A DNA stretch of 64,000 nucleotides from Rebecca billardiae RCC1528 (lineage: Eukaryota; Protista; Haptophyta). The position numbers and the translations under genes are program-made. Positions 13,508 through 46,898 of this stretch are shown one piece after another. Numbering within the stretch: the stretch's first letter is position 1; every line of letters starts with the position of its first letter. The stretch is from contig OZ251224.1 of assembly GCA_965240325.2 (NCBI GenBank), positions 496,001-560,000 of the forward strand. Direction: 5' to 3'. The notes under the pieces were generated by a model, which worked only from the letters and a program-made list of their open reading frames with translations, did not search any database and was not told the DNA's origin.

Positions 13508-14047
13508 TCAGGTGGTCATGGTGTCCAGCTCCGCCAGCAGCTCTGTCACACATCGCGCGAGCGTGTGGGTGAGTGCCTTCACCTCAACGGATGCCTCGAC
13601 GGTGGAAGGATCTTCCGCGGCTTTCTGCTTGTCCAAAATCTCCTGCGTGGTGTTTTGCAGCATCAGTGCCACCTTATTCACGCGTTCGGCTCCCACAAAG
13701 CCCGCTGAACCTTTGCAAGTGTGTGCAGTGCGCCGAAGGTCTGGGAACTGTTTCGCCTCCAGCTGCGAGATCACCTTCGATGGCACATCGCGATTTGTGT
13801 TCAGAAACATCGAGACACCCCTGCCCATCATCGTCTTATCCCCTGGTGCGAGCCGCATGCGCGCGGCGCGGCGGAGGGGTTGGGGGATTCACGGCAGGTC
13901 CCGCACACAGGCACGCGCCGCATGGCGCAAAAGAAGGCCGCGCTCACCGCCGAAGGTCTGCTCGAGGGTCTTGACATTGCACACGTGCATTTCGGAAACA
14001 CTGGCGTAAAGCTCATCGGCGCGCTTTGTCACTTCGTCCTCGGCCAT
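13508..14047 (-). CDS. Stand-alone histidine phosphotransfer (Hpt) protein; intron 13947-13843
   Basis: Spliced product reads LEQTFGGDKTMMGRGVSMFL...LRRTAHTCKGSAGFVGAERV, with the phospho-acceptor HxxKGS motif. Donor GTGAGC, acceptor CACCAG. Confidence 0.9.
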
Positions 14048-14234
14048 GTTGCCAGGCGCGCGCAGTGAATCGCCCCACGCGCGCGCCACCACAGAAGCTC
14101 TGTGCTCAGTGCACCTCGCTCATCTCGCCGCCGCAGGGCGCAAGCTACAAAGCGCACCGTCCGGACAGCAGGCCTGATTGGTTCTCGAGATACAACGACG
14201 ACGTCGATCTTTTCCGCGAATAATAAAAAAGGTT

Positions 14235-14766
14235 TATGGGGGGGGCTGGGTTAGTTTTGGGGTGCCCTCAACTGCCAAAACCACCCCTCGCGGAGAGGCT
14301 TGGACGGACGCAAGATGGGCACCCCTCGCCCTCGCCGTCGAGGACAAGCCGGAGGACGCCCGTGTCGGTAAGGCACCCGCTGGGGCCGGGTCGCCGCGGC
14401 CGCACATGCTCGCGCCAGGCGCGTTTGAAAATGACCCCAAACGAGCCCACCCCAAAACTAACCCGGGAGGCGCGTGCGCACGCGCGGCGCGAGCTCGTGG
14501 GCAGCATTGCTGGCGAAGCGAGCCGCCTTCTCGTGCTGCCCAGGCTGGGGATCCCCCCGCAATCACTCCTGATGAGGCGGAAGCGACGCGCCGAAGCACT
14601 CGCGATGCCACCGAGACGGGCAGAGCCGTTGCCCAGCGTCGCCTTGTGGGACATGGCGAGCCGCTGGAGCGGCCATGCTCTCCCAGTTCGCGCGGCCACC
14701 CCAGTGCGGCGGCCAGTGGCACCCCAAAACTAACCCCACCCCAAAACTAACCCAGCCCCCCCCATA
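14235..14766. mobile_element. MITE, 532 bp including flanking TA, with perfect terminal inverted repeats
   Basis: TATGGGGGGGGCTGGGTTAGTTTTGGGGTG (14235-14264) is the exact reverse complement of 14737-14766. Extra CACCCCAAAACTAACCC copies at ~14448 and ~14720. The outer TA is the probable TSD. Confidence 0.9.
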
Positions 14767-15025
14767 TCGTCAAATCAAGTAGTTTGTGGTCGCTCGGAAA
14801 GTTAGAAGTGGCTGCTGTGGCTCGTCAAGTTGTATCTCACCATCATCTCGAACAGCAACCTCCAAACGTCCAAATACTGTACGGGTTCCCAAGCGTCACG
14901 ATTCACGTGAATCTTCAAGACCAGCGAATCAGCGATGGTCTCAGAATAGTTCGCCTCTTGCCGCGATGCAGCTGCCGACGACAGCTGATGGCAGTCGCAC
15001 GCGGGAAGCACTTGGGTCCCCGAAG

Positions 15026-15655
15026 ATGCCGCCGTCAATCACCGAGGCTCGCGACGCGAGCCAAGGCCCGCGAATCGTCCTGCTCACGGGCATGAGTGGT
15101 GTGGGGAAGTCCAGCGTGAGTAAAGCGTTGCGCCTCATGGTCCCCGAATGTAACATCATCTCCCAGGACGAGCACTTTGCCGATGCCGGCATCACCTACG
15201 CAGCGGCACTAGCGTCTGGCAACTGCGAAATGGAGCGTGCTGAGCATGTGGATTGGGCGAGAGTGCTGAGGGTCGTTCGTGCCGCGGACGGCCTTGTGCT
15301 TGTCGAGGGCCACTGCCTACCCGCCTGCATTGAGCTCGTCGACATGGCCGCAGCCATCTTGGTGCTGAATGCCTCTCCAGATGAATGTCGAGCCCGTCGC
15401 CTTGGTCGGCGCGAGCGCAGCGCGGAGGAAGCCGCCGAGCTCTCGCGCTATTTTGACGAGATTGTCGCACCTGCACACCAGGAACATACCGCCCCGCGGC
15501 TCAGAGAGCTTCTGGAGAGCGGGGATCCTCGTGCCGTCGAACTGGATGCTCGGCAGGCGATTGCCACCGTCATCGATGAGATGATGCTTGCACTTCGACG
15601 GCGACATTGCTTGCCGCCGGGCCGCGGATATGACAAGCACTTACAGTTGGAGTAG
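15026..15655 (+). CDS. P-loop kinase, nicotinamide riboside kinase/uridine kinase-like
   Basis: Walker A IVLLTGMSGVGKSS, IISQDEHF, LVLVEGH, ECRARRLGR lid motif. Confidence 0.8.
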   Translation: MPPSITEARDASQGPRIVLLTGMSGVGKSSVSKALRLMVPECNIISQDEHFADAGITYAAALASGNCEMERAEHVDWARVLRVVRAADGLVLVEGHCLPACIELVDMAAAILVLNASPDECRARRLGRRERSAEEAAELSRYFDEIVAPAHQEHTAPRLRELLESGDPRAVELDARQAIATVIDEMMLALRRRHCLPPGRGYDKHLQLE

Positions 15656-16726
15656 GCTCCGGGCTGTACATATGGGCGTATCATCATCAACTAATCATCA
15701 TGAGACTGGCTCCGGCTCCTGCGGTCCCGGCACCGGCGGGCCCCGACCCCGTCTGGCCGTCAGCCCCCCGAGCTCCGTTCAGACCGTTACGTCTTGGCCC
15801 CGAGCCGAACTGTCCGCCCGAAGTCAACCATTTGATTTTGAACCAAGCGGACGATGTATGATCATCAGAGGCGGCGATCCCGCCGATTGCAGTGTCCGAA
15901 GATGTAACGCTCCGCAGTGACCGGACTGGGCGGCTTCGCGGCGGGCGGGTGCCGTAGTGGGGCCACTGGGGGGGTGGACCGAAGCCGGAGCCTGCTGTTG
16001 AGTGAACCGGGATCGGACTCATTCTATGATTTAACGACACAGGTAGGACGACGCGGGTCCGTCCTGATTCGTCGACTACTGCATCATAATTAGCACACAT
16101 CCGATTTATTATAATAATCGGCCAACGATATTATCAGATATATATTATAAAGAAATTATAATTCGTCGTCTACTGTCACTAGTGTCAGTCGGAAAGTTCT
16201 AAGTCACGCCAGACTGACTGAGTCGCTGCGCGCCTCGGCGCGAGCGCCCAGGCCCGGCCCTGGCCGGCCCAGGCCCAGGCCCAGGGCCAGGGTGCGCGCC
16301 GCGCGCGGGGCGGCAGCGGCCGGCTCAGCATGAGGATGAGGCGATGAGCCGCTGCGCGATCCGATAAGAGCCCGCAGCAGCTGCAGAGGTGCAGAGGAGA
16401 CAGAAGGTCGAGGCCGCGCTTGCTGACGCGCGTGTGCTGGCGGCGGCGCGCGCGTGGGTCGACCGATCCGCCCGGCTTGCGAGCCATCACAAGCAAGCGG
16501 CGGCCGCCCGAGGTCATCAAGCACGCTCCACTCCCGCCGCGCATGCGCAGTTGCACACGCTGCCAAGCGCCTTGTAGCTGCGCGGCCACGCGCTCGCGCC
16601 GAGGCGCACGCCGCCCGCGCGCACCGCATCGTATGATGGGCTCGGTGCGCCCGCGTCCGTCCGTCCATGCGCCTGATGCCCAGCACGATGATGCGCGCCG
16701 CTCGACGGCCCGGCCATCAGCGGTCG

Positions 16727-17856
16727 TCAGCGCCGGTCAAAGCCGTCCCAGAACGGCCCGCGCAGCGGCTTGTAGTTGTGCGCGCTCGCAGAGCTGTACA
16801 CGCCGCCCGCCCTGCGCACGTCTTCGCACAGCGTGCGGTTGGCGAGGCACCACCCCCGCCTCGCGTCCGCGTGGTGCATCAGGAAGTGGTGCTTGGTCGT
16901 CGCGTCCAGGATCTAGTTGGCGTGGATGAGGATCACGTGGCGGTGCTCCTCCTCGCTCAGCTCGGACTCGGGCTGGATCACCGAGGAGCCGCGCACGCCG
17001 ACCCGCCCGGCCGCCTTGCGCCGCACGGCGGGCGGCGCGTGGCGGAGGCGGAGGGGGTGCCGGCTGCCCGTGCGGTAGCTGAACTGAACTGCTGAAGATG
17101 GGCATCGACTCCACCACCACCGCGCCGATCCCGTCGCACGCGCGCACGCGCACGGCGAAGTCCGAGGCGCGCGCCTCGCGCGTCGACAGCGGCCCGCTCA
17201 CGTTGGCCGCGCAGCGCTCGCGCGCGAGCGCGTTAAGCGCGGGCTGGTCGAGCAGGGGCTCCCGCGAGCTGCGCAGCGCGTCGAGCCACGCGCACATCAG
17301 CGCGAGCGTGCGCCGGTTCGCGCGCGCGTGGTACAGCCCGGAGTTGAGCATGGGGCTCGGAAAGACGAGCTGGAATTGCATGTCGGCGCCGAGGCGCGCG
17401 GCGCGCGAGACGAGGGGCGGCCGCGGGTCTCTCAGGAGCGTGACGTCGGCGTCGGCGAAGAGGATGTCCCGCCCGGTCGCGAGCAGCACGGCGTACGCCG
17501 CCTCCACCTTGGCGTGCACCGCCTGCTCGTACTCGCCCACCTCGTACATGCCGGCCGGCGCCAAGGTTGTCGCGCAGCCGCGCGAAGCACTCGCCGCCGT
17601 CGGATACCGTCACCACCACGGGGAAGCCGGACGGTAGCCGCGCCGCGCGCGGCTCGACGACGCGCCGCACCGCCTTCAGGGCGCTCGGCGCGTAGGGCGC
17701 GGCGGTGGCGCACGGGGCGCACGCGGGGCGCGACGCGAGCGCGAGCACGAGTGCGACGAATCTCGCCGTCGCGCGCCGCGTCGTCGTGCTCGCTGCCGCT
17801 GATGCCAGCAGTGGACGGCGACCGGTCCGCGCCGGCCGGGCCGGCCCCGCCCCCAT
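16727..17856 (-). pseudogene. Nucleotide-diphospho-sugar transferase (GT77-like) pseudogene
   Basis: Motifs DILFADADVTLLRDP and LNSGLYHARAN, LDQPALN. Frame break near 17565 with apparently missing sequence, second frameshift near 17080-17095, and TAG at 16915-16913 where the family HANW motif has Trp. Confidence 0.75.
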
Positions 17857-17895
17857 AGCGGTCGGTCGCGCATCCGATGACACCACACCGGACCG

Positions 17896-18954
17896 AGGCC
17901 ACTTCACCGAAATCCAGGTTGGGGAGGATCTCCGCTGCACTGGTGGGGAGGATGTCATCCTCCCCGCTCGCCACGGCTGGGGAGGATGTCCGCCGCGCTG
18001 TCCGGTCTTTCGCCGCTGACAAAACTTTCGAAAACGAAAGTCGCGCCATGGCGGACCCGGTGTTCCCGCCCGGCGGCGAAAGGGGCGCGGGGCCGGTGGC
18101 TCGCGATCCGAAGGGCAGTAGCTCGCGACCTCGCTTGGGCGGTGGCAGCGGCGCTGTGGCACGGCGTGTACCATCCGCGCGGCTGTGCGCGATCGCGCGG
18201 TCCCGTTCGTCGCCACGCCGCGCGCGACCGTTCACGCCACAGTCTTTCCGCACTGGCATGCACCCGTTGCAAGCGCATGACGGCGGAGAGCTCAGAGAGC
18301 CCGTCACGCGCGTGACGACCGTGTGGGATGGGTTGTGCCGATATGAAGGCTGCCCTTCGTAGGCTTTCTGATGAGCCCATCCAACGTTCAGACCATTCCT
18401 AACTGCTGAAAGCCACACGGCCATGGAGTTGTGGACAGTACAGCAGCCGTCCATGATCCTCATGCCCGCCTCATGGGCCGGCGCGTGCCTCCCTGAACAT
18501 GAAGACAAGCTGTACAACCCATCCCACACGGTCGTCACGCGCGTGACGGGCTCTCTGAGCTCTCCGCCGTCATGCGCTTGCAACGGGTGCATGCCAGTGC
18601 GGAAAGACTGTGGCGTGAACGGTCGCGCGCGGCGTGGCGACGAACGGGACCGCGCGATCGCGCACAGCCGCGCGGATGGTACACGCCGTGCCACAGCGCC
18701 GCTGCCACCGCCCAAGCGAGGTCGCGAGCTACTGCCCTTCGGATCGCGAGCCACCGGCCCCGCGCCCCTTTCGCCGCCGGGCGGGAACACCGGGTCCGCC
18801 ATGGCGCGACTTTCGTTTTCGAAAGTTTTGTCAGCGGCGAAAGACCGGACAGCGCGGCGGACATCCTCCCCAGCCGTGGCGAGCGGGGAGGATGACATCC
18901 TCCCCACCAGTGCAGCGGAGATCCTCCCCAACCTGGATTTCGGTGAAGTGGCCT
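17896..18954. mobile_element. Foldback element: ~441-bp inverted arms, 177-bp spacer, 7-bp direct repeat CGGACCG
   Basis: 17893-18336 is the reverse complement of 18514-18957 (no mismatch noticed). CGGACCG at 17889-17895 and 18955-18961. The TSD is near-palindromic, so 3/5/7-bp readings are all possible. Confidence 0.9.
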
Positions 18955-19395
18955 CGGACCGGGCCAGCAGCCTGTGATGAACTGGAGAACCTGCGCTTGC
19001 TGAAAGCTATTGTGGTTATCGTCTATCGAAACGACACGGCGACTACGCGCCCATGTGCAGCGGTATGAAAGGGTACTTACCCACATATGTTTGTGGGTAG
19101 GTGAAAGACTGAAAGAGTGAAAGTGTTTGTGTTCGTCATCGGTCGATTACGTGACGAGGGTAATCAATTACCCGCAAATGAATACTTGCACTTATTGTCC
19201 GGTTCCTGCCAATGTCTTATCTAGATAGGTCGATCATAGCCCCGGGAAGGCGGGCGGTCGGAACTCGGAAGCGAGGTCACCAGTACTTGTGCGGCAGCCT
19301 CAAGGCAGGGTGCGAGCGAGGAAGGCAGGAAGCCGACGTCAAGTGGGCAAGCAGGAGGGGGGGGGGCAACGTCGTCGAGAGGAGCCGCGGCTGCG

Positions 19396-20796: not shown

Positions 20797-22875
20797 CGCG
20801 CCTTGAGACCTCGGCGTCTCAAAGACGGCCCGAGGGCGAGGCGGGCCGGCGCGTCGTGTCAGTCTGTCTGTCGGACCGTCCGAGCGAGGCGGCACTCTCG
20901 GTGCCACACTCCTGCCCCTGGGCCTGGTCGGCCGGACGGCGGGCGACGCGACGAGTCGAGTTATATATATATACTAATACTTGGTGGAGTTCTTAAACGC
21001 GGTGCCATTCCGACCGCCAACGCCGCGGAGACACGGCAGTGCAGTCGGTGACACGCGGCCTGCGGCGGCCGCGCAGGCACCTGCCTGACTAACTACTAGT
21101 ATGGTAAACGCTGATATCGGCTGTATCACGCCCGTCCCGACCGACGACCGTCGACCGAACTATGATGGCGGAAACTTTTTTAAAAATGGAGGGCCCTGGG
21201 CGCCCTGGCGAGCCACCTGCGCTCGCGGGATCGGGGCCGCCCTCTCTCGCTGTGCCGCTTTCGGCGCACGCCCGGCCGCGCGGCGGGCGACGTGTGCACA
21301 CGCTGTGCAGCTCGCGGCGCGTGCGCATTGGCTAGCTGGCACACGTCTCCCGACGCACAAGGCGAATGACCGCAGCGGGGATGCCCGCTTTCGCGCCGCA
21401 AGAACGCGTGCGAGGCCCGGCCCGCCACGGCCGGGCGGCGTGGCCGTGCCGCCTGCACGCTGGTCGCCCATGGACGTGGCTTCGCCGCGCGCGCTGAGGC
21501 CGGCGAGCGTCGCGACTGACTTCCACGACGCGTGCGACGCGCCATCTGCCCGCTTCCTTGCCTGTGACGCACGTCTTCTGCGGGCAATGGCGACTCTCGC
21601 GCGCCCACGCGGGCGGCGAAGCCGCCATCCGCCGCCGCGCTTTGCCGTTGGACAGCGCGGAACATTTCGTTTTGAAAAGCGCAGATCTGAAGACCGGAGA
21701 GCGTGTGTCAGCTGAGCAACGCCAGGCCTGGCGGTGGAGGCCGAAGATGAAGGTTTTTGGCGGCACTTTTGGAGAAAATATCTGTAATACACGGCAGCAA
21801 AATGTTGCATGATGCCGGCGCACTCGGCACAGGCGCACAGCCAGTGACTGCCCCAGTGGCGAGAAGCGGCGCTGCTGACATCTGACGATTGACGTGATGG
21901 AGTTCAGGCTAGGCGCGCACCGCGCGCACCGCGCCTGCGCCCGAGCCGCCGGCTGCCAGCCGCCGAGCCAGCCAGGCCCCGGCCCCGGGCCGGCCCGCCG
22001 GGCGCCCGGGGCGGCGGCATGCACGTAGTCTCGGCTTCTAATAAGTAGGACTGTGCCTATATATCGAAGCAGCCAATCGCTAGTCTCCGTTCAGTCTAGG
22101 CTAGATCCGCAGATAGTTGTAAGTTGAGCCCCCAACTTTCTAGTTTCTCGTAACTCGTGACTGCAGAATGAGCTCCTTGAAATCATTAAACTTAATTGCC
22201 CGCGCTGAGGCTCGATTGCTGCCTGCCCGCGAGGCTCGATTGCTGCCTCTCTAGATGATTGTTATATATATTTTAAATAGTATTAGCATATTCAACGTCA
22301 TGGCATGCAACGGGCAGGCCGGCCGAGGGGGGCACAGCTAACTGCTAAGTCACAGCACGAGCTGTAGCCTGTAGGGCAGCACTGGCAGCAGTCAGACAGC
22401 TTTGAGCTCAGCGGATCCGGGGCAGCACGCTGCACGGTCCTAACTATACTAACTAGGCGTCTCCGGACCACGGTGTACGGACAAACACCAGGATCAGCTC
22501 TCAGGACTCGCCGTCGTCCCCCCGGCCCTCGTGAGTCGTAGTCCGGCCCATCACTTCGGACACTTGTTTGTCTTAGTAATAGTAGACTTGATGGACACTC
22601 TTCCGGCGCCATCTGGCCATTAGTCTAAATTAGATTGGCCCTAGACCTAGTAATTGGCTGCTAGACATAAGACAGCTGCTAGTGCTGGTGACGCCGCGTC
22701 GCGTGTGACTCCGCCTCCCGGCCCTCCGGCCTGGCCCGCCTCCCGCAGGCGCAGGCCGTGCGGTGACCGCGACAGCGGCGGACCGCGACGGCACTGTCGG
22801 CAGCGTCAGCGGGCGCCGGCGACTCGGACGGCACCGCGTAGCTAGTCGGTGTATTTTTTAGAAAAACAATAGCTA

Positions 22876-22898
22876 ATATATATATATATATATATATA
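22876..22898. repeat. (TA)n microsatellite
   Basis: Read directly. Confidence 0.9.
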
Positions 22899-28669: not shown

Positions 28670-28703
<34 letters not shown>

Positions 28704-31293
28704 GCGAGCCCTTGACGAGGCAGCGCGTCTCGGCGGGGGCGGCGGCGGCGGCGCCGCGCGCGCGCACGGCGACGACGGTGGACATGCGCTGCAGCGCCGA
28801 CGAGAAGTGGTGCCGCGCCAGGATCCGCACGCTCTCCACCGGACACGCGGCCGCGGCGGCGCGCTGGGTGAGCAGCTCGCGCTCGGCGGCGGCGAGCTCG
28901 GTCTCGAGCGAGGCGCGCGCGGCGGCGGTGAGGCGCGGCGGCGGTGGCGGCGGCGCGAGCGCGCCGGGCACGGCGGGCGGCGGCGGCGGCGGCGCCGCGT
29001 CGTCCGCGAGCTTCTTCTTGATCGCCTCGATCGCGCGCCCCAGCTTGCGCTGGTCGCCCGGCGAGGCGGTCTGTGTGCCGTGCTCGTAGCTCCAGCGCAC
29101 GCCCTCGAGCGCGGCGACCTCGATGGGGTCTCCGACGAGCTCGGCGAGCGCGCCGACGCTGACGAGGGAGTGGCACGCGGCGAGGATCACCGCGGTGTCC
29201 GGCGCGGCGTCGGCCACGCCCTGCTGCGCCGGCGCCTCCGCCCCGCCCGCCTCGCCGCAGTTGACGACGCCGAGCGGCACGAGCTTGTCCGAGGTGAGCG
29301 TGCCCGTCTTGTCAAACAGGATGCAGTCGATCTTGCCGGCGAAGGGGACGCGGAAGGGCTCGGTGCAGAAGATGCCCTTCTTCATGAGCGCCATCAGCGC
29401 CGTGTTCACCGCCATCGCCGTCTGCATCGGCAGGTGCCGCGGCACCACGCTCGTGATGATGATCACGCACTTGAGCAGCAGCTCGTGTGTCGTGCGGTCG
29501 CCCTTCTCGAGCCCGCGGCGCAGCACGTACGCGGACGAGCAGAGCGCGAAGAGGAGGAGGACGCCGAGGGCGCAGAGGGTCTCCTTCGAGTCGTCGGAGA
29601 CCTGCTGCTGCGAGAACTCGATCATCTGCATCAGCTCGCCCTGCGACGACGAGAACCCCGTGCGCAGCACGTAACACAGGCAGCCGCCGTCGGGCGTGGG
29701 CGGCACGCTCGGCGCGTGCGCCGCCGCGAGCGCGCCGCCGGCCGCGCCGCGCGCGCCGCCGTCGTGCTGCGAGGACATGATGGTCGTGCCGGCGAAGAGC
29801 GCGTGCACGCGGTCGAGCCCGTTCAGGTCGAGCGCGCGCTCGCCGCTGCACCCGTCCTCCGCCAGCTGGTCCTTCATCTGCGGCACCGACTCGCCGGTGA
29901 GCGACGCCTCATTCACGACCGCAGAGCCGCGCAGCAGCACGCAGTCACACGGCACCACGTCGTTCGAGCCGTCGGCGCCGGGCGGGGGCGGCGCGCCGGG
30001 CGCGGCGCGCGCGCCGGGCGCGGCGTCGGGCTCGGTGACGACGGGCGCGCCCGGCGCCGCCGCGCCCGCCGCGCCCGCCGCGCCCGCCGCGCCCGGCGCG
30101 GGGTGGTGCGCGAGCGCGGTCGCGGTGCGCGCGCGCCCCTTGTGCGGCGGCGTGAGCGACACGAGGTCGCCCGGCAGCAGCGCGGTCGTGCTCAGCTTCT
30201 GCCAGGCGCCGAGGCGGTAGACGTGGAGGAGGAAGGGCTTGGCGGACATCTGATTGAGCGTCTTGAGCATCCGCTGCCGCTGGAACACGCTCGTCGACTC
30301 GAGCAGCAGGATCATGCCCACCTGGAAGGCGGTGAAGCCGAGCGACACCGCATCCAGCAGCCAGAGCATCGAGGTGAACACCTGGAAGATCGCGAGGGGC
30401 GAGAGGAGCTGCTCGACGTACAGCTCCCAGAAGGAGGGCAGGCGCACGGAGAGCAGGTTCGGCCCGAACGCCTCCGCCCGCGCGCCCACCTCCTCCTCGT
30501 CGCGCAGCCCCGCCGCGCCCGTGTAGTGCGAGAGCGGGCGGTCGAGCGGCGCGGCCACCAGCCGGATCGCCTGCGCCGCGTCCGCCGGCCCCGCGAGCGA
30601 CTGCTCGGTGGCGTCGTCGGCGCGCGCGGTGGCGGCGTCGAGCACCTCGTACTGCTGGCGCTGGAACTCGCACACCAGCCGGCCCGTCCGCGCCGACGGC
30701 TTCAGCGCCACGATTGCCGGCTTGCCCTTGTGCGGCATCGGCCGGATGCGCACGTGGCAGCCGGGCTCGGCGCGCGCCGACGGCGCAAAGAAGGCGCGCG
30801 CCTTGAAGTCGACGGACCAGTGGCACATCAGGTAGAAGAGGGCGTTGGCCGTCGCGACGAGGAACAGCCCGACGCACACCCACGCGTTCGGCAGCCACTC
30901 GTGCGGCAGCGGGCGCGACTTCTCGGTCGCGGTGCCGTTGGCGAACGTGCCGTTCACCGCCGACGCGTTGGCGTCGAGCGGCGCGAGGTCGGCCGCCGCG
31001 TCGCCAAAGGCGAGGGCGGAGAGGTCGGGCGCGCCGCTCGACGCCGGCCCGCGCTCCGCCTCGGCGGCCTCGCGCGCGAGCGCGTCGGCCGCCGCCGTCT
31101 CGTTTGCGATGCGCTCGAGCCGCTCCTGCTCAGCGAGCGCAGCAGCGTACGGCTCGCCCGCCGTCTGGTACACGAAGTGGAAGGCGACGCAGTAGAGCGC
31201 GACGAAGGTGGCCGCCGCGATGGTGCGCCGGACGGGCTGCTCGCGGTGCACCGTCACGCGCGCGAGCGCCTTTGGGTGGAGGAGGGCGGGCAT
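25655..31293 (-). CDS. P5-type (P5A/Spf1-ATP13A1-like) P-type ATPase; introns 28506-28083, 27281-27143, 26254-26058 (GC-AG), 25937-25802
   Basis: LTGESVPQMK, FDKTGTLT, KGSPE, MLTGD, MCGDGGNDVGALKQA, GDASVAAPFTS, IRQGRCTL, VNYKGRPW. All four introns restore the frame. Confidence 0.95.
28195..28290. repeat. (GT)n-rich microsatellite inside ATPase intron 1
   Basis: Read directly. Confidence 0.9.
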
Positions 31294-31493
31294 CCCACAA
31301 GTGCGCGCGGAGACGCGCGGCCTTGGCGCCTGCCCAGTGCCTTGCTCGCGCGCGTGGCGAGGCGTTCCGGACGTGGCAGTCTCGTAAGTTCAGGACTGTC
31401 CGAACGTTTCTCCCGGACTTCCGGAGGGGATGACCGGACAGTGACCATCATTTGAGAGGATCTCACAGTGGGTCACCTGTCAGGCCTTTCCGC

Positions 31494-32622
31494 CAAGGGC
31501 GGTAAGGGCTGTCAACTCCCAGTGGCGGCGGTGGCAGAGGTTGGTCGCCGCTTCGTCGCTGCGCGGCCTCGCTCCAGCGACTAACTCTCGTGGGCGCCCG
31601 CCCTGGGGGGCGAGTGGGGCGCGCACGGCGCGAGCTCCTGTGGCCGTGTACGCGCGCGCGGAGGCGGCGCGCGTGGCTGGGCAGGTGCTAAGGAGTGTAT
31701 GTCGCCCTCCCACGCCGCGCGCCTTGCTCGCCGCCGCTTTCGCCGCGCCTCAGGCCAGCGCGCACGCGTGCGCCGCCTCCAGAGCCAGCCTCGGGCAATC
31801 GGCAGCCGCCCGCGCATGTGTGGTGCGCGGTCTGGTCGGCGCGAGTCGGTCGGGGCCATCGGGCGAGGCTCGCATACTATAGACGCGCGCCATGCTGCCT
31901 CGCGCCGCCGCGCGTGGGCCCGGTCCCATCCCGTGAAGCTGTTGAAGGAAGCTGATCGATGAATGCACGACAAGCAGAAATGAGCTCGAATACGTGACAG
32001 TGAGCGCACATGCGCGTGATAGGCGGCCGCATTGGGCGCGTGTACGGCGTCCTATGAGTGCATTGCCCCGCTCTTCATCGCCTGCGCGCGTCTATTGTGC
32101 TCTCCAGCGTCTCCATGAGCGTCCAAACATGAGCATTTTCGCATTCGTGCTGCAGTTCGTGTCAGACCTAAGATGCTTGCGTGTCGACCCATGACAACCC
32201 ACGCGCGGCGGCGCGAGGCAGCATGGCGCGCGTCTATAGTATGCGAGCCTCGCCCGATGGCCCCGACCGACTCGCGCCGACCAGACCGCGCACCACACAT
32301 GCGCGGGCGGCTGCCGATTGCCCGAGGCTGGCTCTGGAGGCGGCGCACGCGTGCGCGCTGGCCTGAGGCGCGGCGAAAGCGGCGGCGAGCAAGGCGCGCG
32401 GCGTGGGAGGGCGACATACACTCCTTAGCACCTGCCCAGCCACGCGCGCCGCCTCCGCGCGCGCGTACACGGCCACAGGAGCTCGCGCCGTGCGCGCCCC
32501 ACTCGCCCCCCAGGGCGGGCGCCCACGAGAGTTAGTCGCTGGAGCGAGGCCGCGCAGCGACGAAGCGGCGACCAACCTCTGCCACCGCCGCCACTGGGAG
32601 TTGACAGCCCTTACCGCCCTTG
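31494..32622. mobile_element. Foldback element: 425-bp inverted arms, 279-bp spacer, 7-bp TSD TTTCCGC, CAAGG...CCTTG termini (P-element/Galileo-like architecture)
   Basis: 31494-31918 is the reverse complement of 32198-32622. TTTCCGC at 31487-31493 and 32623-32629. Confidence 0.92.
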
Positions 32623-32738
32623 TTTCCGCTATGTGCGATTGGTGCAACACATGTCTCAACTGCTCCTCACTCCCGCTATGTGATGACACGTGTCGACTGG
32701 CCCGTCGAGCGCTTGCTGCCGTCGGCATCGCGCGCGTG

Positions 32739-33258
32739 ATGAGGTGGCCGGCGCTGTGCGCCCTCGCGGCGCTGATCGTGGGCTGCGGCGCGCACGGACG
32801 GCGGCATGTGCACGTCAGGCCTCCGGCAGCGCGATTCCGCGGCGGCTCGGACGACCCGCAGAGCGCCGAGGCCGTGCTGCGCTTCACGCGCGGCTGCCTC
32901 GTCGGCGTCGAGTCCAAGCAGACGCTCGCCGGGGCGTTCCTGCCGCTCTTCCGCGTGGTGATGCGCTACTTCGGTGCGTGCGCCGCGCGAGCCTGCGCGC
33001 GCGCGACTCCCCGCCGCCATCCCCGCCACGCGCGCCTCACGCCACCGCGCGGCGGCGCGCAGGCCACTGGTGGGTGGACGAGCCGCCGGCCATCGAGCGC
33101 AGATCAGCGCTCGTCTCCAACCTGCCTCTGCTCCGCGGCGGGGTGAGTAAGCTGGTCGCAAAGTACGCGACCAACACCTCGGAGATCCCGAAGCTAGTCG
33201 TGGACAACTCGACAGAGGGCGGTGGCGCCAAGAAGGCCGCCAAGCCGGCCGCGGCGGC

Positions 33259-33291
<33 letters not shown>

Positions 33292-34827: not shown

Positions 34828-35418
34828 TCAGTGGCGGTGGGGCTGGGGTGTCCCTGCGGATGGAGGCTGCATACTCGAGAACATGTCGGTGACGAACGCC
34901 TGCGACAGGCCGGTGCGCTTGTCGTCATCCACCACGCGCAGCAGACTCCGCTCGGCCACGGTCACGAGCTGCGGTGGGTCGTGCGCGCTGCGCCAGCCCT
35001 CGCAGCCCTCGCCTCCCGGCGGCGGCACCGCGGGCGGCGACCCGTCCAAGAGTGCAATCGTTGCCGCCCGGACGGTCTGGAACTCGATCACCCGGAAGGC
35101 GTCGTGCGGCCGAGAGGGCGCGGCCAGGCTCAGGCTGAGCGGCATGATTTGCTCGACGGCGTGCAGCGCGGCGGCCCAGTGCGCTTCGTCCCTGCAGGCG
35201 AGGTACAGCATCGTCTGCGTGGAAGGGGGGGTGGGCAAGGGGAACGCGCGCGCGGGGCGGTGGGCGTGGCGCACGGCCGGGATGGGCACCATGGGGTGAC
35301 GAGCTCTTCGGGGAGGCAAGCACGAGCATGCGCCGCCGCGCACCCTCGCCGGAAGCTTGAGTGTCGCTATTTCGGCCTGCTCATCGTGGAGCTGGCGCTT
35401 CCGCCCCGTCATCGCCAT
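34828..35418 (-). CDS. Hypothetical protein, possible RRM-like fold; probable intron 35343-35215
   Basis: MAMTGRKRQLHDEQ start; GTGCGC donor and CACGCAG acceptor in phase 0; FRVIEFQTVRAATIAL resembles RNP1 plus helix. Confidence 0.5.
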   Translation of the reverse strand: MAMTGRKRQLHDEQAEIATLKLPARVRGGACSCLPPRRARHPMVPIPAVRHAHRPARAFPLPTPPSTQTMLYLACRDEAHWAAALHAVEQIMPLSLSLAAPSRPHDAFRVIEFQTVRAATIALLDGSPPAVPPPGGEGCEGWRSAHDPPQLVTVAERSLLRVVDDDKRTGLSQAFVTDMFSSMQPPSAGTPQPHRH

Positions 35419-35632
35419 CCTGCGGCGGACCAACCGTCTTGTCGTCTGCACCTCTGCGGCCGCGCCCGGACCGCGCGGCGAACGGCGGGTGGCGCACAGC
35501 CGCACGCTGCGCCTCCGGCGATCGATTTCGTCGATCTCGCGCGTGATGATTTTCGTCCGGTGCGCGCGTGTGCCTGGGCGGCTGCACAGCCGACGCTGCG
35601 ACGGCGACGGGTCGCCTCGGCACGTCATTGTC

Positions 35633-36808
35633 ATGCCCGCACGCGGCGCCATCGCGCGGCTCGCGCTCGTCGCCACCGCGGTGGTGGCGAGCGCGCCCGC
35701 GGCGCGCGCGGCTGCCCCGCGCGACGCGCGGCTGAGCGCGCGCGCCGAGGTGCACAGCGCCCTCCTCACGGCGCAGCGCTTCGGCCCGCCGCCGCGCTCG
35801 CTCGCGGCGGCGCATGAGAGGCTGAGCGCCGCGCTGCTCGGCCGCGCAGACGGCGAGGGCCGCGGCGCGGAGGAGGTGGTGGCGGCGGTGGAGGCGCTGC
35901 TGCCGCTGCTCGAGCACGCGAGCGCGCCCGCGCCCGTGATCAGCGCCGCGCTCGGCGCGCTGCGCTCGCTGCTTCTGCTCGACGGCGCGGACGCGAGCGC
36001 GCGCGCCGCGGGCGCGGCCGGCGCCGCCGCCGCCGCCGCCGCCGAGGGCGGCGGCGGCGTGGCGCGCGTGGTGCCGCTGGTGCTCGAGCGCGCGCTCCGG
36101 CTCGCCCTGCACGAGCACGCGCGCGCGCCGCCCGTGCACGAGCTCCTCCAGCTCAAGCGCCTGCAGCTGCTCGACGCGTGCGTGCGCCGCTCGGCCGCGC
36201 CCGGCGGCGCGCCGCTGCCGCCGCCGAGCGTGCGCGCCGTGTGCCGCGAGGCGCTGCGGCTGGTGGGCCCCGCGCCGGGCGAGGCGCCGAGCGGGCTGAG
36301 CGCGGGCGGCGGGGGCGAGGCGCTGCGCCACGCCGCCACCGAGCTGCTCCTCGAGCTCTGCCGCGCCGTGTGCGCGCCGCTCGCGGGCGCGGCGGCGGTG
36401 CTCGCCGCGTCCGCCGATAATGGCACCGCCGCCGCCGCCGCGCCGCCCGCCGTCGGCGCTCCGGCGGGCGAGCACGGCGCGGCGGCGGCGGCGCTGCTCG
36501 AGGTGCTCGCGGCCGAGCTCGACGGCGCGGCCGACGAGGCGCGCCTCGTCGCCGCCCTCAAGATGACCGTCTCGGCGCTCAGCGCGTGCGGCGGCGCGCT
36601 CGACGCGGCGCCGCACGCGTGGCTCTCGCGCGCGTGCGGGGCGTTGCTGGCGCCCGCGCTCGGCGCGGTGGGCGCGCGCGCGAGGGAGGCGGCGCCGATC
36701 GCCGCGCTCGTGCTGCACGCGGCCGCCGCGCTCGCCGCCGCCGCGCCGCGCGCGCTGCACGCCGCGCACGCGCAGCTCCACGCCGCACTGCTCGGCACAC
36801 ACTGCCTG

Positions 36809-36849
<41 letters not shown>

Positions 36850-37002
36850 GGACGAGGGCGCGGAGGGCGGCGGCGGGGGGCTGGCGGCGCCGAGCGCGGA
36901 GGTGCGCGCGCTGGGCGCGGTGGGCGCGCAGCAGCTGCTCTGCGCCGCGCGCGCCGAGCTGCTCGTGCAGTGGTGGTGCGCGTACGACTGCGCGGGCGCG
37001 CT

Positions 37003-37059
<57 letters not shown>

Positions 37060-40000: not shown

Positions 40001-41044
40001 GCGGCCGCGGCACGCCCTGCCGCCACGTGCCACCTCGGCGTGCTCCGCGCCGCCGCCGCGCTCGCCTCTCACATCGGCGCGCAGGCGGGCGGCGCGGACC
40101 GTGGCGCGCCGGCCGCCGCGCTGCGGCTGGCGCGCGCGACGCTGGGCGCGCTCGACGGCGCGGAGGGCGGCGGCGAGCCGGGCGCGGCGCGCGCCCTGTC
40201 GGACACGCGCGCGCTGTGCGTGGCCGCGCTCGCGCGCGCGGTCGACGCGGCCGCCGCCTCGGACGACGAGCCGGCGCTCGAGCGGTGCGTGCGCGCCCTC
40301 GGCGCCCAGCTCGGCGCGCCACACGCGCGCGGCGCGGCGCGCGCCGAGCCCGGCGGCGCGCCGAGCGGCGGCGCGGCGGTGGGCGGCGCCGAGGGCGGCG
40401 CGGGCGGCGGCGGCGGCAGCGCAGGCTCCGCCCTGCGTTGCGACGCTGACTGGGCCGCTGTGCAGCTGCCCGCGCTCTGCGCGCTCGGCGCGGCCGCGAG
40501 CTCGGCCGGCTGCGAGCGCGCGGCGCGCGAGGCCCTCGGCCTCCTCGAGGCGGTGCTGGGCGCGCCGGGGTGCGCGCTGCCGCCGCGCGCGCTGCTCGAC
40601 GGCGTGATGCGCGCGCTGCTGCCGCCCGCTGCCAGCGCGCTGCGCGCGTGCCGCCCCGCCGGCGGCGTGCGCCAGCTTCGGCTGCGCGCGCCCGCGCAGC
40701 CGCCCGCCGCCGCCGAGGCGCGCGCGGTGCTCGCGTCGCAGGCGCTGGTGCGCGTGCTGCTGCTGCGGCTGCCCGCGCTGCTCGACGACGCCGCGTTCGC
40801 GCCCGCGTGGCTGCAGCTCGTCGGCACGCTCGACGCGTCCGCGCGCGGCGGCGCGTGCGACGGCGCGCGCGAGGTGCTCGCGCACGGGCTGGGCAGCGCG
40901 CTGCAGAAGCTCGCCGTCGCAGGCTACTTTGCGCCCGCGCCCGGCGGCGGCGCGGCGCGGCCCGCGGCGCCGGCGGTGTGGGACGGCACGCAGCGGCTGC
41001 TCGACGAGCTGCAGCTCCGGCCCGGCGCGATGGCGCTGCCGTGA
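35633..41044 (+). CDS. Large Sec7-domain ARF guanine-nucleotide exchange factor (GBF1/GNOM-like), Ala/Gly-rich
   Basis: FRLPGEAQKIGRVMEAF (glutamate finger), VLAFAIVLLNTDAHNAQVQDKMS, NAGLNDGADFP, upstream YDC (HUS-box-like). Start inferred at MPARGAIARL. Confidence 0.9.
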
Positions 41045-41446
41045 CGGCCATGCATATTGCATGCACGCTCGCGCGAACAGCAGCCGCTGCGTGACAGCCG
41101 ACTGTGCTCTGCCCTCGGGCGCCCTCAGCCGCGGGGATGCCACCGCACACTGCTACTGTACGGTAGTGAGTGATGCACGTGCTCCGTCGTACTGTATTGA
41201 CTATTGTAGTTCGGACGGCTCCCATCTTCAAGACTCTGGAGCGGCGGCGGCACCGCAATCATCAGACCCTTGATCAGACCAAGGGCCGTGCAAGAGCGCA
41301 TGCACACACTGGACAAAAAATGATGCTGTTGGCTCGCAGACCCTTGCTCGCAGGCAGGCGAGATTCGGCTGGTTTGCCGCCCCGGCCGGGCGGGCCGCCC
41401 ACCCGGCGGCCGGCGATCATCGTCACGGCGCTTCATCGCTCGAGGC

Positions 41447-42319
41447 ATGGCGGACTCCCAAGTGATTGGCCGCAATCGTGGCAAGAGGAAGGCGAGCGCA
41501 AACGACCGCGAGAGCCTCGTCGCGATGCGCGAGGAGTTCGAGACCAGCACGGGCATGAGCGACGCGCTCAGCCGCGTGCGCGCGCACTTTGAGCGGACGG
41601 GCGATCTGCCACACACCGTGTATAGCTGCTTGTGCCAGGGGCCGGAGGAGGCGCTGTCCAGGCTGAGCACGAAGATGGCGAACATCGCCCTCGTCGCCGC
41701 CCTCTTCATCGTCGGCTCGATCGACGCGCTGGTCAACCCGCCCGCCGTGTTTGATGAGGAAGGCGTGCACCCGCTCGTGCAGATTGTCTTCACACTTATG
41801 ATGGCGGCGGCGATCGGCGCGTTCGGTTGCCTGATCATCTTCTTCACGCTGATGGCGAACCACTTCCCCAAGCTGATGCACCACGACGCCGACATCCTCC
41901 TCTTCCTACTCGAGACCAACTTTGACAGCGCGCTCATGAAGTACATGTCGATCCCGATCGTCGTCGGGATCGCGTGCTCGCTGCTCGGCGTGTACGTGAG
42001 CCTCAACGCGGTCTACCCGTGGTTCGTCGTGATACCCGCCACGCTCGTCTTGATCGCGCCGTCGCTGCATGTCGCGATCCTGGACAAGAACTTCGGCTAC
42101 TCGCCGCTGCGCGGCGGGCTGTGGACCTTCTACCGCCCGGCGGCGGTGCTGCGCAAGCAGCGCATCGACTTCCTGCTCAGCACCGTGTACGCGCCCCTCG
42201 TCGAGTACGACAAGGAGGTCCTCCCGCTGCCCGTCGACGAGGCTCGCACCATCGAGGCCGCGTTGGTAGCGCGCTCGTCACCTAAGCGCCAGTCACACAG
42301 GACCACAACTACGGGCTGA
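41447..42319 (+). CDS. Hypothetical multi-pass membrane protein (~4 TM)
   Basis: Strong GC3 codon bias; hydrophobic segments NIALVAALFIVGSI, IVFTLMMAAAIGAFGCLIIFFTL, IPIVVGIACSLLGVYVSL, WFVVIPATLVLIA. Confidence 0.8.
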   Translation: MADSQVIGRNRGKRKASANDRESLVAMREEFETSTGMSDALSRVRAHFERTGDLPHTVYSCLCQGPEEALSRLSTKMANIALVAALFIVGSIDALVNPPAVFDEEGVHPLVQIVFTLMMAAAIGAFGCLIIFFTLMANHFPKLMHHDADILLFLLETNFDSALMKYMSIPIVVGIACSLLGVYVSLNAVYPWFVVIPATLVLIAPSLHVAILDKNFGYSPLRGGLWTFYRPAAVLRKQRIDFLLSTVYAPLVEYDKEVLPLPVDEARTIEAALVARSSPKRQSHRTTTTG

Positions 42320-43399
42320 TGACTACGGGCTGCTGCGGCTCACTGCTCCTAAGAATCCGCCTGAGGAGTCATATCATCATAACACTCACAGTCACAGAGG
42401 CAACGGTTACGGACACGCCCGACTGACAATGATGTGAGTGACACGGTGACTACGCCTGACGGTGCCCGTCCCGTGCTCCGTGCCGTGCGGCTCATCCGGG
42501 CTCGGCGGCCCGGGCGGCGGGCGGTACTCACAGTCACACCGTTACCGAGTGCGGCTGTCGGCGGCCCGTGGTACGCGTAACGCGACCGGGTGCCCCATCA
42601 CTGCATCATCGTCATTCCGCGATGAAGAAATCATTCGTCATCATTGGTTCAAATCATTAATATTCATCAATATATATACACGTAGTCAGTCACTGTCTGA
42701 GTGACATCATCGCGGGTCGTCAGACGTCAGCGGTCAGGCCTAAGCAGCAGTACTCTAGCACGACCGGGGCTGAGCCGCCCGGCGCCCGTAAGCCGCCACG
42801 GTGTCGGCGCCTTAGACTACTAAGTCGGTGACAGGTCTGACTCTGAACGCCGACGGACTAACTGTCAGTGTCACGGAGCCGCGCGGGCCCCCGCCGCGCA
42901 GGCTGCGCACTGCCGGTCACTGTCTGCCAGTGTGACTGTCGGACTAGGTCTAGTGTGAGTGGCGCACTCACACTGAGTGTCCTGACTGGCCGAGGCGCAA
43001 CGGCACTGAGGCAATCACTCACTGGCAGGCCAGCAGCTGCCGTCGCTACTCGTCTGGATGCCGCGGAGCTAGTCCGCGACGCCAGTACCGTAGCGCACTC
43101 TCTAGATATATATCTACGACTTATATAATATATATATAATATAATATAATAATGGCAATGCCCGACTGATGTCACCGTTGCGGGCGTTGATGACACTCAG
43201 CGTGGTGTCACACACGCCCACGGTGCCCGACTCGGCCACGGACCGGACTTAGATCGACCAAGTCTGCGCCGCCGCAAGCTTATATCAGACTGAGCATCAG
43301 CTGAGCTGGCGCAGACAGAAAACTCACTCTAAGCTGGTGCTGGCCAGTGGCAGTGGCAGCGACGTTGGAGCCTCAGCCCTCAAGAGGCCAGGTCCCTCG

Positions 43400-45384
43400 T
43401 CAGCTGTCGCCGCCTGGCTCGGACGCGTCCGGCCGGCCGTGCGCGGCGGCGGTGGCGTTCCACGGCGCCGTGCCCGCGCCGCGCTCGCGCCCGCCGCGCT
43501 CGCGCGCCGCGCCCGCCAGCGCGCGCCGCCGGCCGCGCGCGCGCCGGAGCAGCCCGGGCCGCGCGTCGAGCGGCGTGGCGTGCCCGCAGCGGTCTGAGAG
43601 GAACGTGTTGTTGGTCAGGATGGAGGCGCGCGGCTGGACGCGCGCGCAGTCGGCGCGCACGAAGCCGACCCTGCGGTGCGCGCGGTCGAGGATCACCTCG
43701 CGGTTGCGCAGCACCGCCGCGCCGAGCACCACGCCGTTGTGCTTGTTGTCGAACGCCGCGAGGCAGCGCACCGCGCGCCCCTCGGGCGGCGCGGGCCGCA
43801 CGCGGATCTCATACGTGTACTCGAGCGGCGAGAGCGCGAGCGGCGCGGGGGAGCCGTCGAAGTGGAGGGTCATCTCGGCGAACTTGTCGCGCTCGGCGGG
43901 GCTCATCGCGTAGCAGAACTCGTCGTTGTACCGCGTCTTGTGCTTCCGCGCCGCGCACGCGCCCCACGGGCAGCCGCTCGTGAAGGAGGCGCGCAGCCTG
44001 CGGTACGCGTCTGGCGGCAGGTAGAGGAACGTGGTGCCCGTGTCGATGATGGTCGAGACGTAGCGGCGGCGGTCGACGCCTGGCGGGGAGGCGCGGGGAG
44101 GGCGGAGGAGGCGGGCGCGAGCGCGCGTCGGAGCGCGCGTTGTGGGCGCCGCCGGCCGCGGCGCCGCCGCGCCGGAGCGCGCGGCGCGCCGCCGCGCGCC
44201 GCGCACGCGCGTGCTGTGCGCTGCCTCAAACACAGCCGCGCCCGACCGCCGCCCGCGGCGCGCGCGGACGACCGGGCGCGGCCGAACGACGGCAGCGCGC
44301 GCGCGCCACCCGCCCGCGCGCGCGCCACCCGCCGCGCCAACCCCGCCGCGCGCACCGAACGAGCGCCCGCCGATCCGGATGTCGTTGAGCGCGAGCGCGT
44401 AGAACTTCTGCTCGCGCATCGGCACCCAGTGCACGTGCTCGGCGCGCTCGGGACGCACGCGCCCGCCGAAGACGAGGAGGCCGGTGCGCTCGGCGATGCA
44501 GAAGGCGAAGATGTTCTCCATGCGCCGCTCCTCCACCAGCCGGTCGATGGGCGTGGGCGAGGCCAGCCCGCCCGAGCGCGTCGCGGAGATGCCCATGCTG
44601 CGCCAGCCAGGAGCAGCGGGGTGTCGCGCGCGCGCGCGGGCGGCGGCCGCGCGGCGCGGCGGGGCGGGCGGCAGTCGGCGCGAGCGCACGGCGCGCACGG
44701 ACGGGCGCGGGCGAGAGCGGCGCACGCGCGCGTGCCGCTCGGCGCGCGCGCGCACATCCCGTCGGCCACCTGCCCCTTGAACAGCCCCGTCTCGTACGTC
44801 TGGCAGCCGACCACCATCCGCTCGGTGAACGCGCCGCGCCCGTCGCCAAAGTGCACGTGGTCGGTGTACACGGCGCCGCGGATCTGCGAGCCCTCGGTGT
44901 ACGAGACGGCGTAGCCGCACTGCCGGTTCTCGCACCGCGAGCAGCGCATGCGGTACGGCGGCGACGCGCACCCCAGCTTGGTCGCGGTGAGCGAGCGCTG
45001 CGGGTCGTACTTTGGGTTCTTGTGACGGCCGCACTTGGTGCACGTCGCGCACGGCACGGCGGTCATGCTCGAGCCCGTGTCGATGATGAGCTGGTGGATG
45101 GAGCCAGGCGATCCGATGCAGATGCTCGCGGCGAAGTAGCCCAGCGTCTCCAGGTTGCCCGAGATGTCGCCCGCGAGCGCGCGGCCGTGCGCGCCGCCCT
45201 CGCCGACGGCGCCGCCCTCGTGGTAATCGCGCCGTGCGATCGGCAGGCGGCGTGGGAGGCGCATGTCGGCAAAGTCGATGAACTCAAGGCGCGCCGCCCC
45301 CATCGGCGGCGCCTCAGCCGACGAAGACGGCCCCGCCGCGCCCCATGCCAGGCAGGCGAGCAGCGAGGCAGACCCCCACCGCAT
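43400..45384 (-). CDS. A1 aspartic protease, plasmepsin V/ASP5-like; introns 44755-44598 and 44355-44080
   Basis: Signal peptide; LIIDTGSSMTAVPCATCTKCGRH; YTEGS flap; spliced ADGIMGI; TIIDTGTTFLYLP; VVLGA. Confidence 0.92.
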
Positions 45385-45510
45385 CGCCGCCGCGCCACAG
45401 CACTGGCTGCGCTCCCCACGCGGGCCAAAGCAGGGCAGTGGGTCCGGGGCGAAGGCGCCGACCCGGACGAGAGAGTCCGGATAAGGTGCTCGTCCTCGAG
45501 TCCTGCCAAC

Positions 45511-45858
45511 GTAGTTGAAACGGCTGAGAGACCGTTAGAGAAACCGCCTGACGAACGTCGACGGGGAGACTTCTCCCAAGGAACCACCCGTCCCAGAAAG
45601 CCCGTGAGCCCGTAGCGTCTTCGGCTCAGATCAGCGGGCTCAAAACATTCCATGGAATGTTTTGAGCTCAGTGATTATGAAATGGGCTGGTAACGAATAG
45701 CTGCGGGTATTTTCAAATACCAGGGAGTCTTGATGTAGGGGGCTGGGACGGGTGGAGAGGGAGTCTCCGTGTCGGTTGGCAGGTTTTTGAAGTTTGGTGT
45801 CATCAATATGCGTGACGAAATTCATAGGCAAACCGCCGCCGGATACGGTTACAACTGC
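45511..45858. mobile_element. Decayed MITE/foldback with imperfect TIRs and a central perfect 30-bp palindrome
   Basis: GTAGTTGAAACGG vs reverse complement GCAGTTGTAACCG at the ends. CCACCCGTCCCAG (45584-45596) is inverted at 45743-45755. GCTCAAAACATTCCATGGAATGTTTTGAGC at 45638-45667. No clean TSD. Confidence 0.6.
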
Positions 45859-46100
45859 CACACATAGAAAACTGACGCGGCGACGTCTGTTCGGTGCTGC
45901 GGTTCATAGGCCAAATCTGGTCAAGATCGCATCATCCGGCGCGGCAGCCCGAGGAAGATCATCATCAGGGCTGCGCGGCGGAAGGTGTGCGGCAAGGGGC
46001 TCGGGACGAGCTTTCTGTGCAGCCCTTCAGCCCCTGTCGTGCCCACTTGAGGTGCAGTGCAGCAGGCCACCCGCCGGCCAGCCACTCGCGCACGCTCGAG

Positions 46101-46898
46101 ATGGAGGTGTCTCCGTACGTGGACGCTCCCGTCGTGGCGCCCGCGCCGACCTCGAAACCGAAGCCCGACGCGTCGACGGTGGGCCGCACCAACCAGCTCG
46201 TGTGGGCTCGCGACGCCAAATCTGCGCTCGCCACGCTGACGCTCAAGAAGCTGATGCGGGCACGGGGCGTGCTGCAGGTCTCGCACATCTTCTCCAAGTG
46301 GAGGATGGCGGCTCGCAACATCGTTGTCGACCAGCTCGTGAACGATCAGCTCGTCCCCCTCCTCACCTGCAGGGCACACGCGGTGACCGACATGCGGCCC
46401 GATCCGTGCGTGTATGTGGCGTTCGGCGATGAGCTCTCGGCGCGCGACGTCGAGATCGCGGTGCTGCAGCACGAGATTGTCGGGCTCGAGACGCGGGCCG
46501 AGTCGGCCGATGCCAAGCTCCGTCTGCCGCCCTTCGAGCGCGGCCTGAGCAGAGAATCATTCGCCACCAAGCTCGATCAGCTCTCGCCGCCCTCGCCGAC
46601 GCGCTCAGGTGTGCGCTCGCCAACACCGACCGACTTCAGCGAGACTGCGACGGCCTTCCAGACGCCCAGCCGCTTCCGGGCTAACGGCGGGCTGACGCTC
46701 AAGCAGCTAAGTGAGGGCGACCGCGCTCTGAGCGCCGCCGTCGAGCGCGAGCTCCGCCGCGCGGCCGAGCTCGCCAAAGCGAAGCAGCGGATCGAGCGGC
46801 TCGACGGCCGCCTCCAAAAAGCGACCAACGATCTCAGATCCGAGCGCGCCGAGAACGAGCGACTGCGCGCGATGGTCGCGCGCATCGGCAGCAAGTGA
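46101..46898 (+). CDS. Hypothetical coiled-coil protein
   Basis: Coding-like codon bias; heptad-rich C-terminus (ELAKAKQRIERLDGRLQKATNDLRSERAENERLRAMV). Confidence 0.7.
   Translation: MEVSPYVDAPVVAPAPTSKPKPDASTVGRTNQLVWARDAKSALATLTLKKLMRARGVLQVSHIFSKWRMAARNIVVDQLVNDQLVPLLTCRAHAVTDMRPDPCVYVAFGDELSARDVEIAVLQHEIVGLETRAESADAKLRLPPFERGLSRESFATKLDQLSPPSPTRSGVRSPTPTDFSETATAFQTPSRFRANGGLTLKQLSEGDRALSAAVERELRRAAELAKAKQRIERLDGRLQKATNDLRSERAENERLRAMVARIGSK

Follow-up and report, generated by a model that had tools for sequence, protein, structure and literature searches.

Four families of non-autonomous inverted-repeat transposons in divergent promoter gaps of Rebecca billardiae, and a moderate excess of two of them beside gene starts

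Hermes inserts in DNA free of nucleosomes, and Mu and mPing insert close to the 5′ ends of genes; the target-site duplication (TSD) made by the element FB is 9 bp. For six fly transposons, insertions arising de novo ‘primarily targeted promoters’ (PMC10018349), while S. pombe retrotransposons, as Bowen (2003) is cited in PMC10085805, are under-represented in convergent gaps owing to a preference for promoter-containing gaps. Foldbacks of the Galileo type make a 7-bp duplication and carry terminal inverted repeats (TIRs) that are 98–100% identical within a copy (PMC3573991). In Fusarium oxysporum, a miniature inverted-repeat transposable element (MITE) of the mimp family, which is consistently found upstream of genes, lies in the shared upstream region of SIX3 and SIX5 (PMC3599309). 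Here we analyse a stretch of 64,000 nucleotides from the haptophyte Rebecca billardiae RCC1528 (assembly GCA_965240325.2, 72 Mb in 41 contigs; contig OZ251224.1, G000:C5:496001-560000; hereafter ‘the window’), in which four gaps between head-to-head genes each hold a different inverted-repeat element, named A to D in order of position. Copies of two of these, B and C, from across the genome carry a general 2:1 excess of gene-5′ over gene-3′ flanks, a signal that is real but moderate, and divergent gaps, being bounded by 5′ flanks on either side, gain copies from it.

This placement resembles that of the P element, the fly transposons and Tf1/Tf2 in its near-absence from coding sequence, its enrichment beside gene starts and its depletion from convergent gaps. 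The difference from the P-element and Tf1/Tf2 cases is that the evidence here consists of 53 copies as they now stand in a GC-rich alga, and not of mapped de novo insertions; the excess is also modest, about two-fold. In structure, B and C are like the Galileo, Foldback and Tetris-type elements of Drosophila (PMC3573991, PMC4079207), as long inverted arms that are 98–100% identical within a copy dominate them, around a short loop. Element C shares the 7-bp duplication of Galileo, short repeats occur inside the arms of element B as they do in the Galileo, Foldback and Tetris group, and non-autonomous ‘two-TIR’ copies dominate, as they do there. The 5-bp duplication of element B, by contrast, is unlike that of Galileo (7 bp) or FB (9 bp), and the termini GAGGCC (B) and CAAGGG (C) set the two families apart from the Drosophila elements. 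As with mimp, we see a small TIR element within a bidirectional upstream region; unlike mimp, four families are involved, two of them 1.1 kb long with very long arms. A to D are new families, but the kind of element and the kind of bias are already known, and no new mechanism is revealed, since the build-up of transposons near promoters is well established in other systems.

An earlier note on this DNA, made from its letters alone, had listed eight head-to-head gene pairs and had placed an inverted-repeat element in each of the four widest gaps. All 16 predicted starts are ATG codons at the coordinates given in that note, and all eight pairs were recovered by a codon-usage strand caller, with ATG-to-ATG distances, in order along the window, of 200, 978, 1539, 1445, 214, 716, 148 and 143 bp. 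Wide gap 1 (14047/15026, 978 bp) holds element A (14237..14764, 528 bp, non-coding with TIRs; identified from its arms, flanks and genome copies), which is separated by 189 bp from the start codon at 14047 (minus strand) and by 261 bp from the one at 15026 (plus strand). Wide gap 2 (17856/19396, 1539 bp) holds element B (17895..18955, a 1061-bp foldback; arms, TSD and genome copies), with the start codons at 17856 (minus strand) and 19396 (plus strand) 38 bp and 440 bp away, respectively. Wide gap 3 (31293/32739, 1445 bp) holds element C (31494..32622, a 1129-bp foldback; arms, TSD and termini elsewhere in the genome), which leaves 200 bp to the start codon at 31293 on the minus strand and 116 bp to that at 32739 on the plus strand. 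Wide gap 4 (45384/46101, 716 bp) holds element D (45584..45755, 172 bp and MITE-like; TIR and genome copies), 199 bp and 345 bp from its two ATGs.

All four elements are multi-copy, non-coding transposons, one to each wide gap as claimed, and no further intact TIR element was found in the window. Other repeats in the window (4114-4271, 5104-6019, 16013-16077 and 21222-21723) lie in non-divergent gaps. The remaining four head-to-head gaps hold no element: 11725..11926 (200 bp) and 35418..35633 (214 bp), both known from the strand caller and the distances; 57090..57239 (148 bp), between a SET-domain gene and a gene of 647 amino acids, where genes called independently on a public contig form exactly the same pair; and 60356..60500 (143 bp), where an earlier in-frame ATG at 60392 would reduce the gap to 35 bp. 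Elements A–D lie 38–345 bp from the neighbouring ATGs and, with the elements subtracted, the wide gaps still measure 316–544 bp, more than any of the four compact gaps. For the size of other divergent gaps, the retrieved flanks offered a single further case, too few to use.

Gene orientation throughout was inferred from codon bias. Guanine-cytosine (GC) content in the window is about 70%, with local peaks of 86%, and such high GC yields long spurious open reading frames (ORFs) in every frame; we therefore built a strand caller on codon log-odds, trained on Pfam-supported ORFs and then self-trained. Third codon positions of the window ORFs are 88% G+C, and the domains found in these ORFs are of eukaryote type (protein kinase, P5A-type ATPase, TAXi_N aspartyl protease and thioredoxin). 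On Pfam-supported window ORFs, the caller was correct for 61 of 66 pieces of 150 nt and 30 of 31 pieces of 300 nt (92–97%). At other loci, 12 of 20 randomly drawn strong flank segments had a Pfam match in the predicted frame at E ≤ 1e-4; the matches to V_ATPase_I and MFS_1 begin at profile position 1 directly beside the element, and several N-terminal domains do likewise. According to the caller, about 47% of positions in the window are coding.

Since the window by itself amounts to a post-hoc sample, the test of placement was run on the other copies of B and C: 55 independent copies beyond the window, each with 1.5-kb flanks (families A and D fell outside this classification). The empty site of every copy was rebuilt and the nearest coding segment called on either side. 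Just one or two of the 55 copies lie inside predicted coding sequence, against a coding share of about 47% in the window. Among the 53 non-coding copies, 18 (34%) are in divergent, six in convergent and 12 in tandem gaps, the remainder being without a call on one or both sides; their flanks are gene-5′ in 60 cases and gene-3′ in 27. The insertion point is commonly 50–250 bp from the 5′-adjacent coding segment, with a median of 192 bp and an interquartile range of 105–446 bp.

As a null, we took the window with its four elements removed and bootstrapped over gaps, which assigned 13.6% of non-coding positions to divergent gaps (bootstrap 5–28%) and a gene-5′ identity to 38% of flanks (25–55%). 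Averaged over the bootstrap nulls, the divergent-gap excess had a p of about 0.02 and the flank excess a p of 0.001. That there is no real preference, with the pattern due either to noise in sampling or to artefacts of the strand caller and of the single-window null, is in our estimation improbable. The window was indeed picked post hoc, the bootstrap null for the divergent share reaches as high as 28% against the 34% observed, and a p of about 0.02 for divergent gaps is no more than modest. Yet the flank excess survives a conservative 50:50 null (p = 2.6e-4) and all four caller thresholds, the stricter ones keeping a ratio of about 2:1 (47:21, 40:19 and 35:19); divergent copies outnumber convergent ones 18:6 (p = 0.011) despite there being about three times more base pairs in the convergent gaps of the window; and the caller was validated by Pfam at independent loci. 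Base composition was rejected as a cause of the 5′/3′ asymmetry: divergent gaps are 62% GC, convergent gaps 64% and insertion sites 57–61%.

The placement reported by the earlier note for one window extends to the B and C families beyond it, with 34% of 53 copies in divergent gaps against about 14% of non-coding DNA free of transposable elements. Its proposal that such elements target, or are retained in, divergent promoters stands as far as enrichment goes, but specificity does not follow, because two-thirds of the copies are elsewhere (in tandem gaps, upstream of a single gene and, for a few, in convergent gaps). At 34% per copy, the probability that four of four window elements would fall in divergent gaps is about 0.013; the window is therefore a lucky tail of the distribution, and its four occupied gaps out of eight are the upper tail of a bias and not a rule.

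Promoter-proximal integration at accessible DNA, combined with the purging of exons, seems to us a somewhat better than even explanation for this placement, with the elements as passengers. Transposases would probably integrate at the most accessible DNA, the nucleosome-poor zone of promoter and 5′ untranslated region (UTR), as in P elements and Tf1, and purifying selection would then remove insertions in exons. Non-coding copies lie about twice as often beside a gene start as beside a gene end; a divergent gap, with a gene start on both sides, receives about 2.5 times its share of non-coding DNA, and the passenger elements stretch gaps from about 300–550 bp to 0.7–1.5 kb. Targeting, although inferred, is the most likely mechanism. 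When B and C were pooled, copies whose arms differ by at most one base had 26 gene-5′ and 13 gene-3′ flanks and those with more diverged arms had 34 and 14 (Fisher p = 0.8); equal bias in near-identical-arm and diverged-arm copies is what would be expected if the bias arises at insertion or shortly afterwards.

Several points weigh against this explanation. The null was drawn from one 64-kb window with about 35 gaps, and its bootstrap interval is wide. Orientation was read from codon bias rather than from annotation or transcripts, and about one call in three for the flanks is weak (score < 45). Among C copies, the youngest, at ≥99.7% identity to the one in the window, have four gene-5′ and seven gene-3′ flanks, a small sample that leans towards selection rather than targeting for family C. 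On the retention account, insertion would be roughly even, and selection would clear exons, 3′ UTRs and terminators faster than upstream space. The lack of a 5′ excess in those youngest copies, set against 27:8 for the remaining C copies, favours that account, as does the ratio of 18:5 for C copies with diverged arms against 13:10 for those with identical arms; and the scarcity of copies in coding sequence means that selection is at least partly responsible for what we see. Set against these observations are the matching ratios of young and old copies in the pooled data and the presence of the bias in the youngest copies of family B (13:3); moreover, there are no a priori grounds to expect an insertion 40–200 bp upstream of an ATG to do less harm than one within a convergent gap of 1 kb. 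We regard retention by itself as unlikely, but selection is a serious rival to targeting and both probably contribute.

Another alternative, built on roles that the earlier note had suggested, is that symmetric foldbacks are kept in divergent gaps because they work there, as portable two-way promoters, as spacers or insulators that uncouple the two genes, or as sources of hairpin RNA that tune both neighbours. Such co-option appears quite improbable. In its favour, copies commonly lie within 50–250 bp of a coding start, transcription of at least some neighbours must begin within an arm or immediately next to it, and arms stay near-identical in propagating lineages. Element B leaves just 38 bp before the ATG at 17856, so that the gene there either begins its transcripts within or next to the arm or is impaired, a spacing that might serve as a lead on function although it is not evidence of one. 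Against co-option, two-thirds of copies lie outside divergent gaps, young copies and near-identical subfamilies speak for recent transposition rather than long-term retention, and deletion of the mimp MITE from the bidirectional SIX3/SIX5 promoter left expression unchanged (PMC3599309). Furthermore, four unrelated families are placed alike in the window, as would be expected if the site, and not the element, determines where they lie. There is a slim chance that a perfectly symmetric, hairpin-forming element of 1.1 kb, set into a shared promoter of 150–500 bp, could act as a mobile two-way promoter, an insulator or a source of double-stranded RNA; if so, both neighbours would receive the same new upstream sequence, and arm homogenisation (29 of 35 C variants and 39 of 50 B variants occur in both arms) might persist because that role, or transposition itself, depends on symmetry.

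In this compact, gene-dense and very GC-rich algal genome, the short promoters shared by back-to-back genes tolerate insertions of 0.2–1.1 kb at 40–260 bp from start codons, and several unrelated families of DNA transposon have a gene-start bias in common. For annotation, wide divergent gaps are good places in which to seek young transposons, and natural pairs of insertion and empty-site alleles could be used in testing the minimum size of a working promoter.

A to D are four different families of non-autonomous cut-and-paste DNA transposons: two long-armed foldbacks, one TA-flanked element and one 172-bp MITE. The view of the earlier note that several unrelated families are present is borne out by unrelated TIRs and by duplications of 2, 5 and 7 bp. 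TIRs are found at both ends in all four (28–30 nt in A, 442–449 nt in B, 425 nt in C and 13 nt in D), and each family has many dispersed copies with shared ends and mostly unique flanks. Perfect inverted repeats of 425–449 nt might be suspected of being chimeric fold-back reads, and arms that are 100% identical invite that suspicion; however, there are dozens of copies on many contigs and, because every copy has its own duplication and unique flanks, the perfect arms are not an artefact of assembly, an idea to which we attach next to no credence and which the copy-specific duplications and flanks rule out.

A Pfam search of ten internal ORFs of A, B and C gave no match at E ≤ 0.01, and D is just 172 bp long. 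In a transposase search of the whole genome, Tnp_P_element (PF12017) and TNP-like_RNaseH_C (PF21789) had no match, the control genomes being silent too. The same search returned two MULE Pfam matches, neither linked to the listed termini, and one match to the hAT dimerisation domain, which is unrelated; none of these yielded a transposase partner.

Comparison of copies sheds light on how the foldback arms evolve. Two subfamilies of element C are distinguished by 25 differences, all 25 of which occur in both arms. Variants found in at least two copies are mirrored more often than confined to one arm (29 versus 6 in C, 29/35; 39 versus 11 in B, 39/50), and the private variants of B (copies L001–L027) and C (copies L031–L060) are mostly one-armed. 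From these patterns, the arms of B and C appear to be homogenised occasionally in the propagating lineage, by gene conversion or hairpin repair, and not at each transposition. Regeneration of the arms at every transposition is ruled out by one-arm variants common to up to seven copies. On the invertible cassette suggested by the earlier note, the copies give an indirect view, with no sign of loop inversion: asymmetric arm variants are always on the same side of the loop (for example, one variant in seven B copies).

Element A has the TIR TGGGGGGGGCTGGGTTAGTTTTGGGGTG, with arms of 28–30 nt, and is flanked by TA at 14235-14236 and 14765-14766. These TAs agree with the TA target-site duplication of Tc1/mariner elements (Stowaway-like MITEs). 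There are about 16 near-full copies in the genome, several of which match the query together with both TAs. Four copies of a telomere-like motif, GGGTTAGTTTTGGGG or its complement, occur in element A, two in the TIRs and two in subterminal or internal positions; the stretches that bear them are 14242-14266, 14443-14464 and 14718-14766. These motifs are possibly candidate binding sites for a transposase.

Element B consists of arms of 442–449 nt, within which GGGGAGGAT motifs are repeated, around a loop of 177 nt, and its terminus is GAGGCC. The duplication flanking the window copy is GGACC (5 bp, at 17890-17894 and 18956-18960). At least 27 copies, 87–100% identical, occur in the genome; a perfect 5-bp duplication surrounds 23 of the 27, with a different sequence each time, and a related subfamily of 824 bp exists. 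A search for empty alleles at the window loci, made by exact-protein look-ups with five flanking genes, led to two public contigs. One of these, a short-read contig that carries the kinase gene (L061, from ERR14847151), matches the window at 99.8% identity beyond 18987; upstream of that point it departs from the window 27 bp past element B (L061:1-41 versus 18949-18989), with an 8-bp indel, and ends 38 nt farther on. This suggests a second allele just to the right of element B, with no bearing on the empty site either way.

Element C has perfect arms of 425 nt, a loop of 279 nt and termini CAAGGG...CCCTTG, and its 7-bp duplication, TTTCCGC, lies at 31487-31493 and 32623-32629. A perfect 7-bp duplication was found in 26 of 30 copies, different in sequence except for one that is repeated: the independent copies L037 and L052 have the identical duplication CTCTGAG. 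Otherwise, the target sites of C and B have weak position preferences. The termini of element C occur in the genome 86 times in forward and 87 times in reverse orientation, and pair into size classes of about 0.6, 1.1, 2.3 and 3.1–4.2 kb, the last with C1:1321321-1325516 as an example. With its 7-bp duplication, element C falls within the 7–8 bp expected of the P superfamily (Galileo-like foldback). Assignment to the hAT superfamily was rejected: the termini fit YARNG, but the duplication is 7 bp and not 8. A hAT partner was likewise rejected, as the sole PF05699 match in the genome (C17:765118) lies outside every listed pair of C termini. The gene adjoining one element C copy (L053:2748-4100) has 11 EsV-1-7 cysteine-rich motifs (Pfam E = 1e-164); the original description of this repeat came from a brown-alga virus. 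On the right flanks of L015, L045, L046 and L057, B or C sites adjoin copies of a further repeat, which is about 1 kb long and has an inverted structure inside it, the copies being 85–94% identical to each other; to judge from these four sites, foldback-type elements seem to cluster or nest.

Element D has a perfect 13-nt TIR, CCACCCGTCCCAG, and a central palindrome of 46 bp (45630-45675). The inverted repeat that had been noted in wide gap 4 is this palindrome, which is real but merely the centre of the larger 172-bp MITE. At least 40 copies, with 82–95% identity, are all restricted to the 45584-45755 stretch, and neither the window copy nor the genome copies have a clear duplication. Element D is an older family.

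Rfam and tRNA scans of the window gave no match in the gaps. About 16 of the 19 adjacent gene pairs in the window switch strand, giving eight or nine divergent gaps, about eight convergent gaps and few tandem ones (the caller may merge same-strand neighbours). Between 46900 and 54700 lies an 8-kb stretch of lower GC (56–67%), almost without coding signal, which contains repeats at 48766-49047 and 50208-50914 and a further pair at 49683-49788 and 51004-51109; this stretch supplies much of the non-divergent non-coding space of the window.

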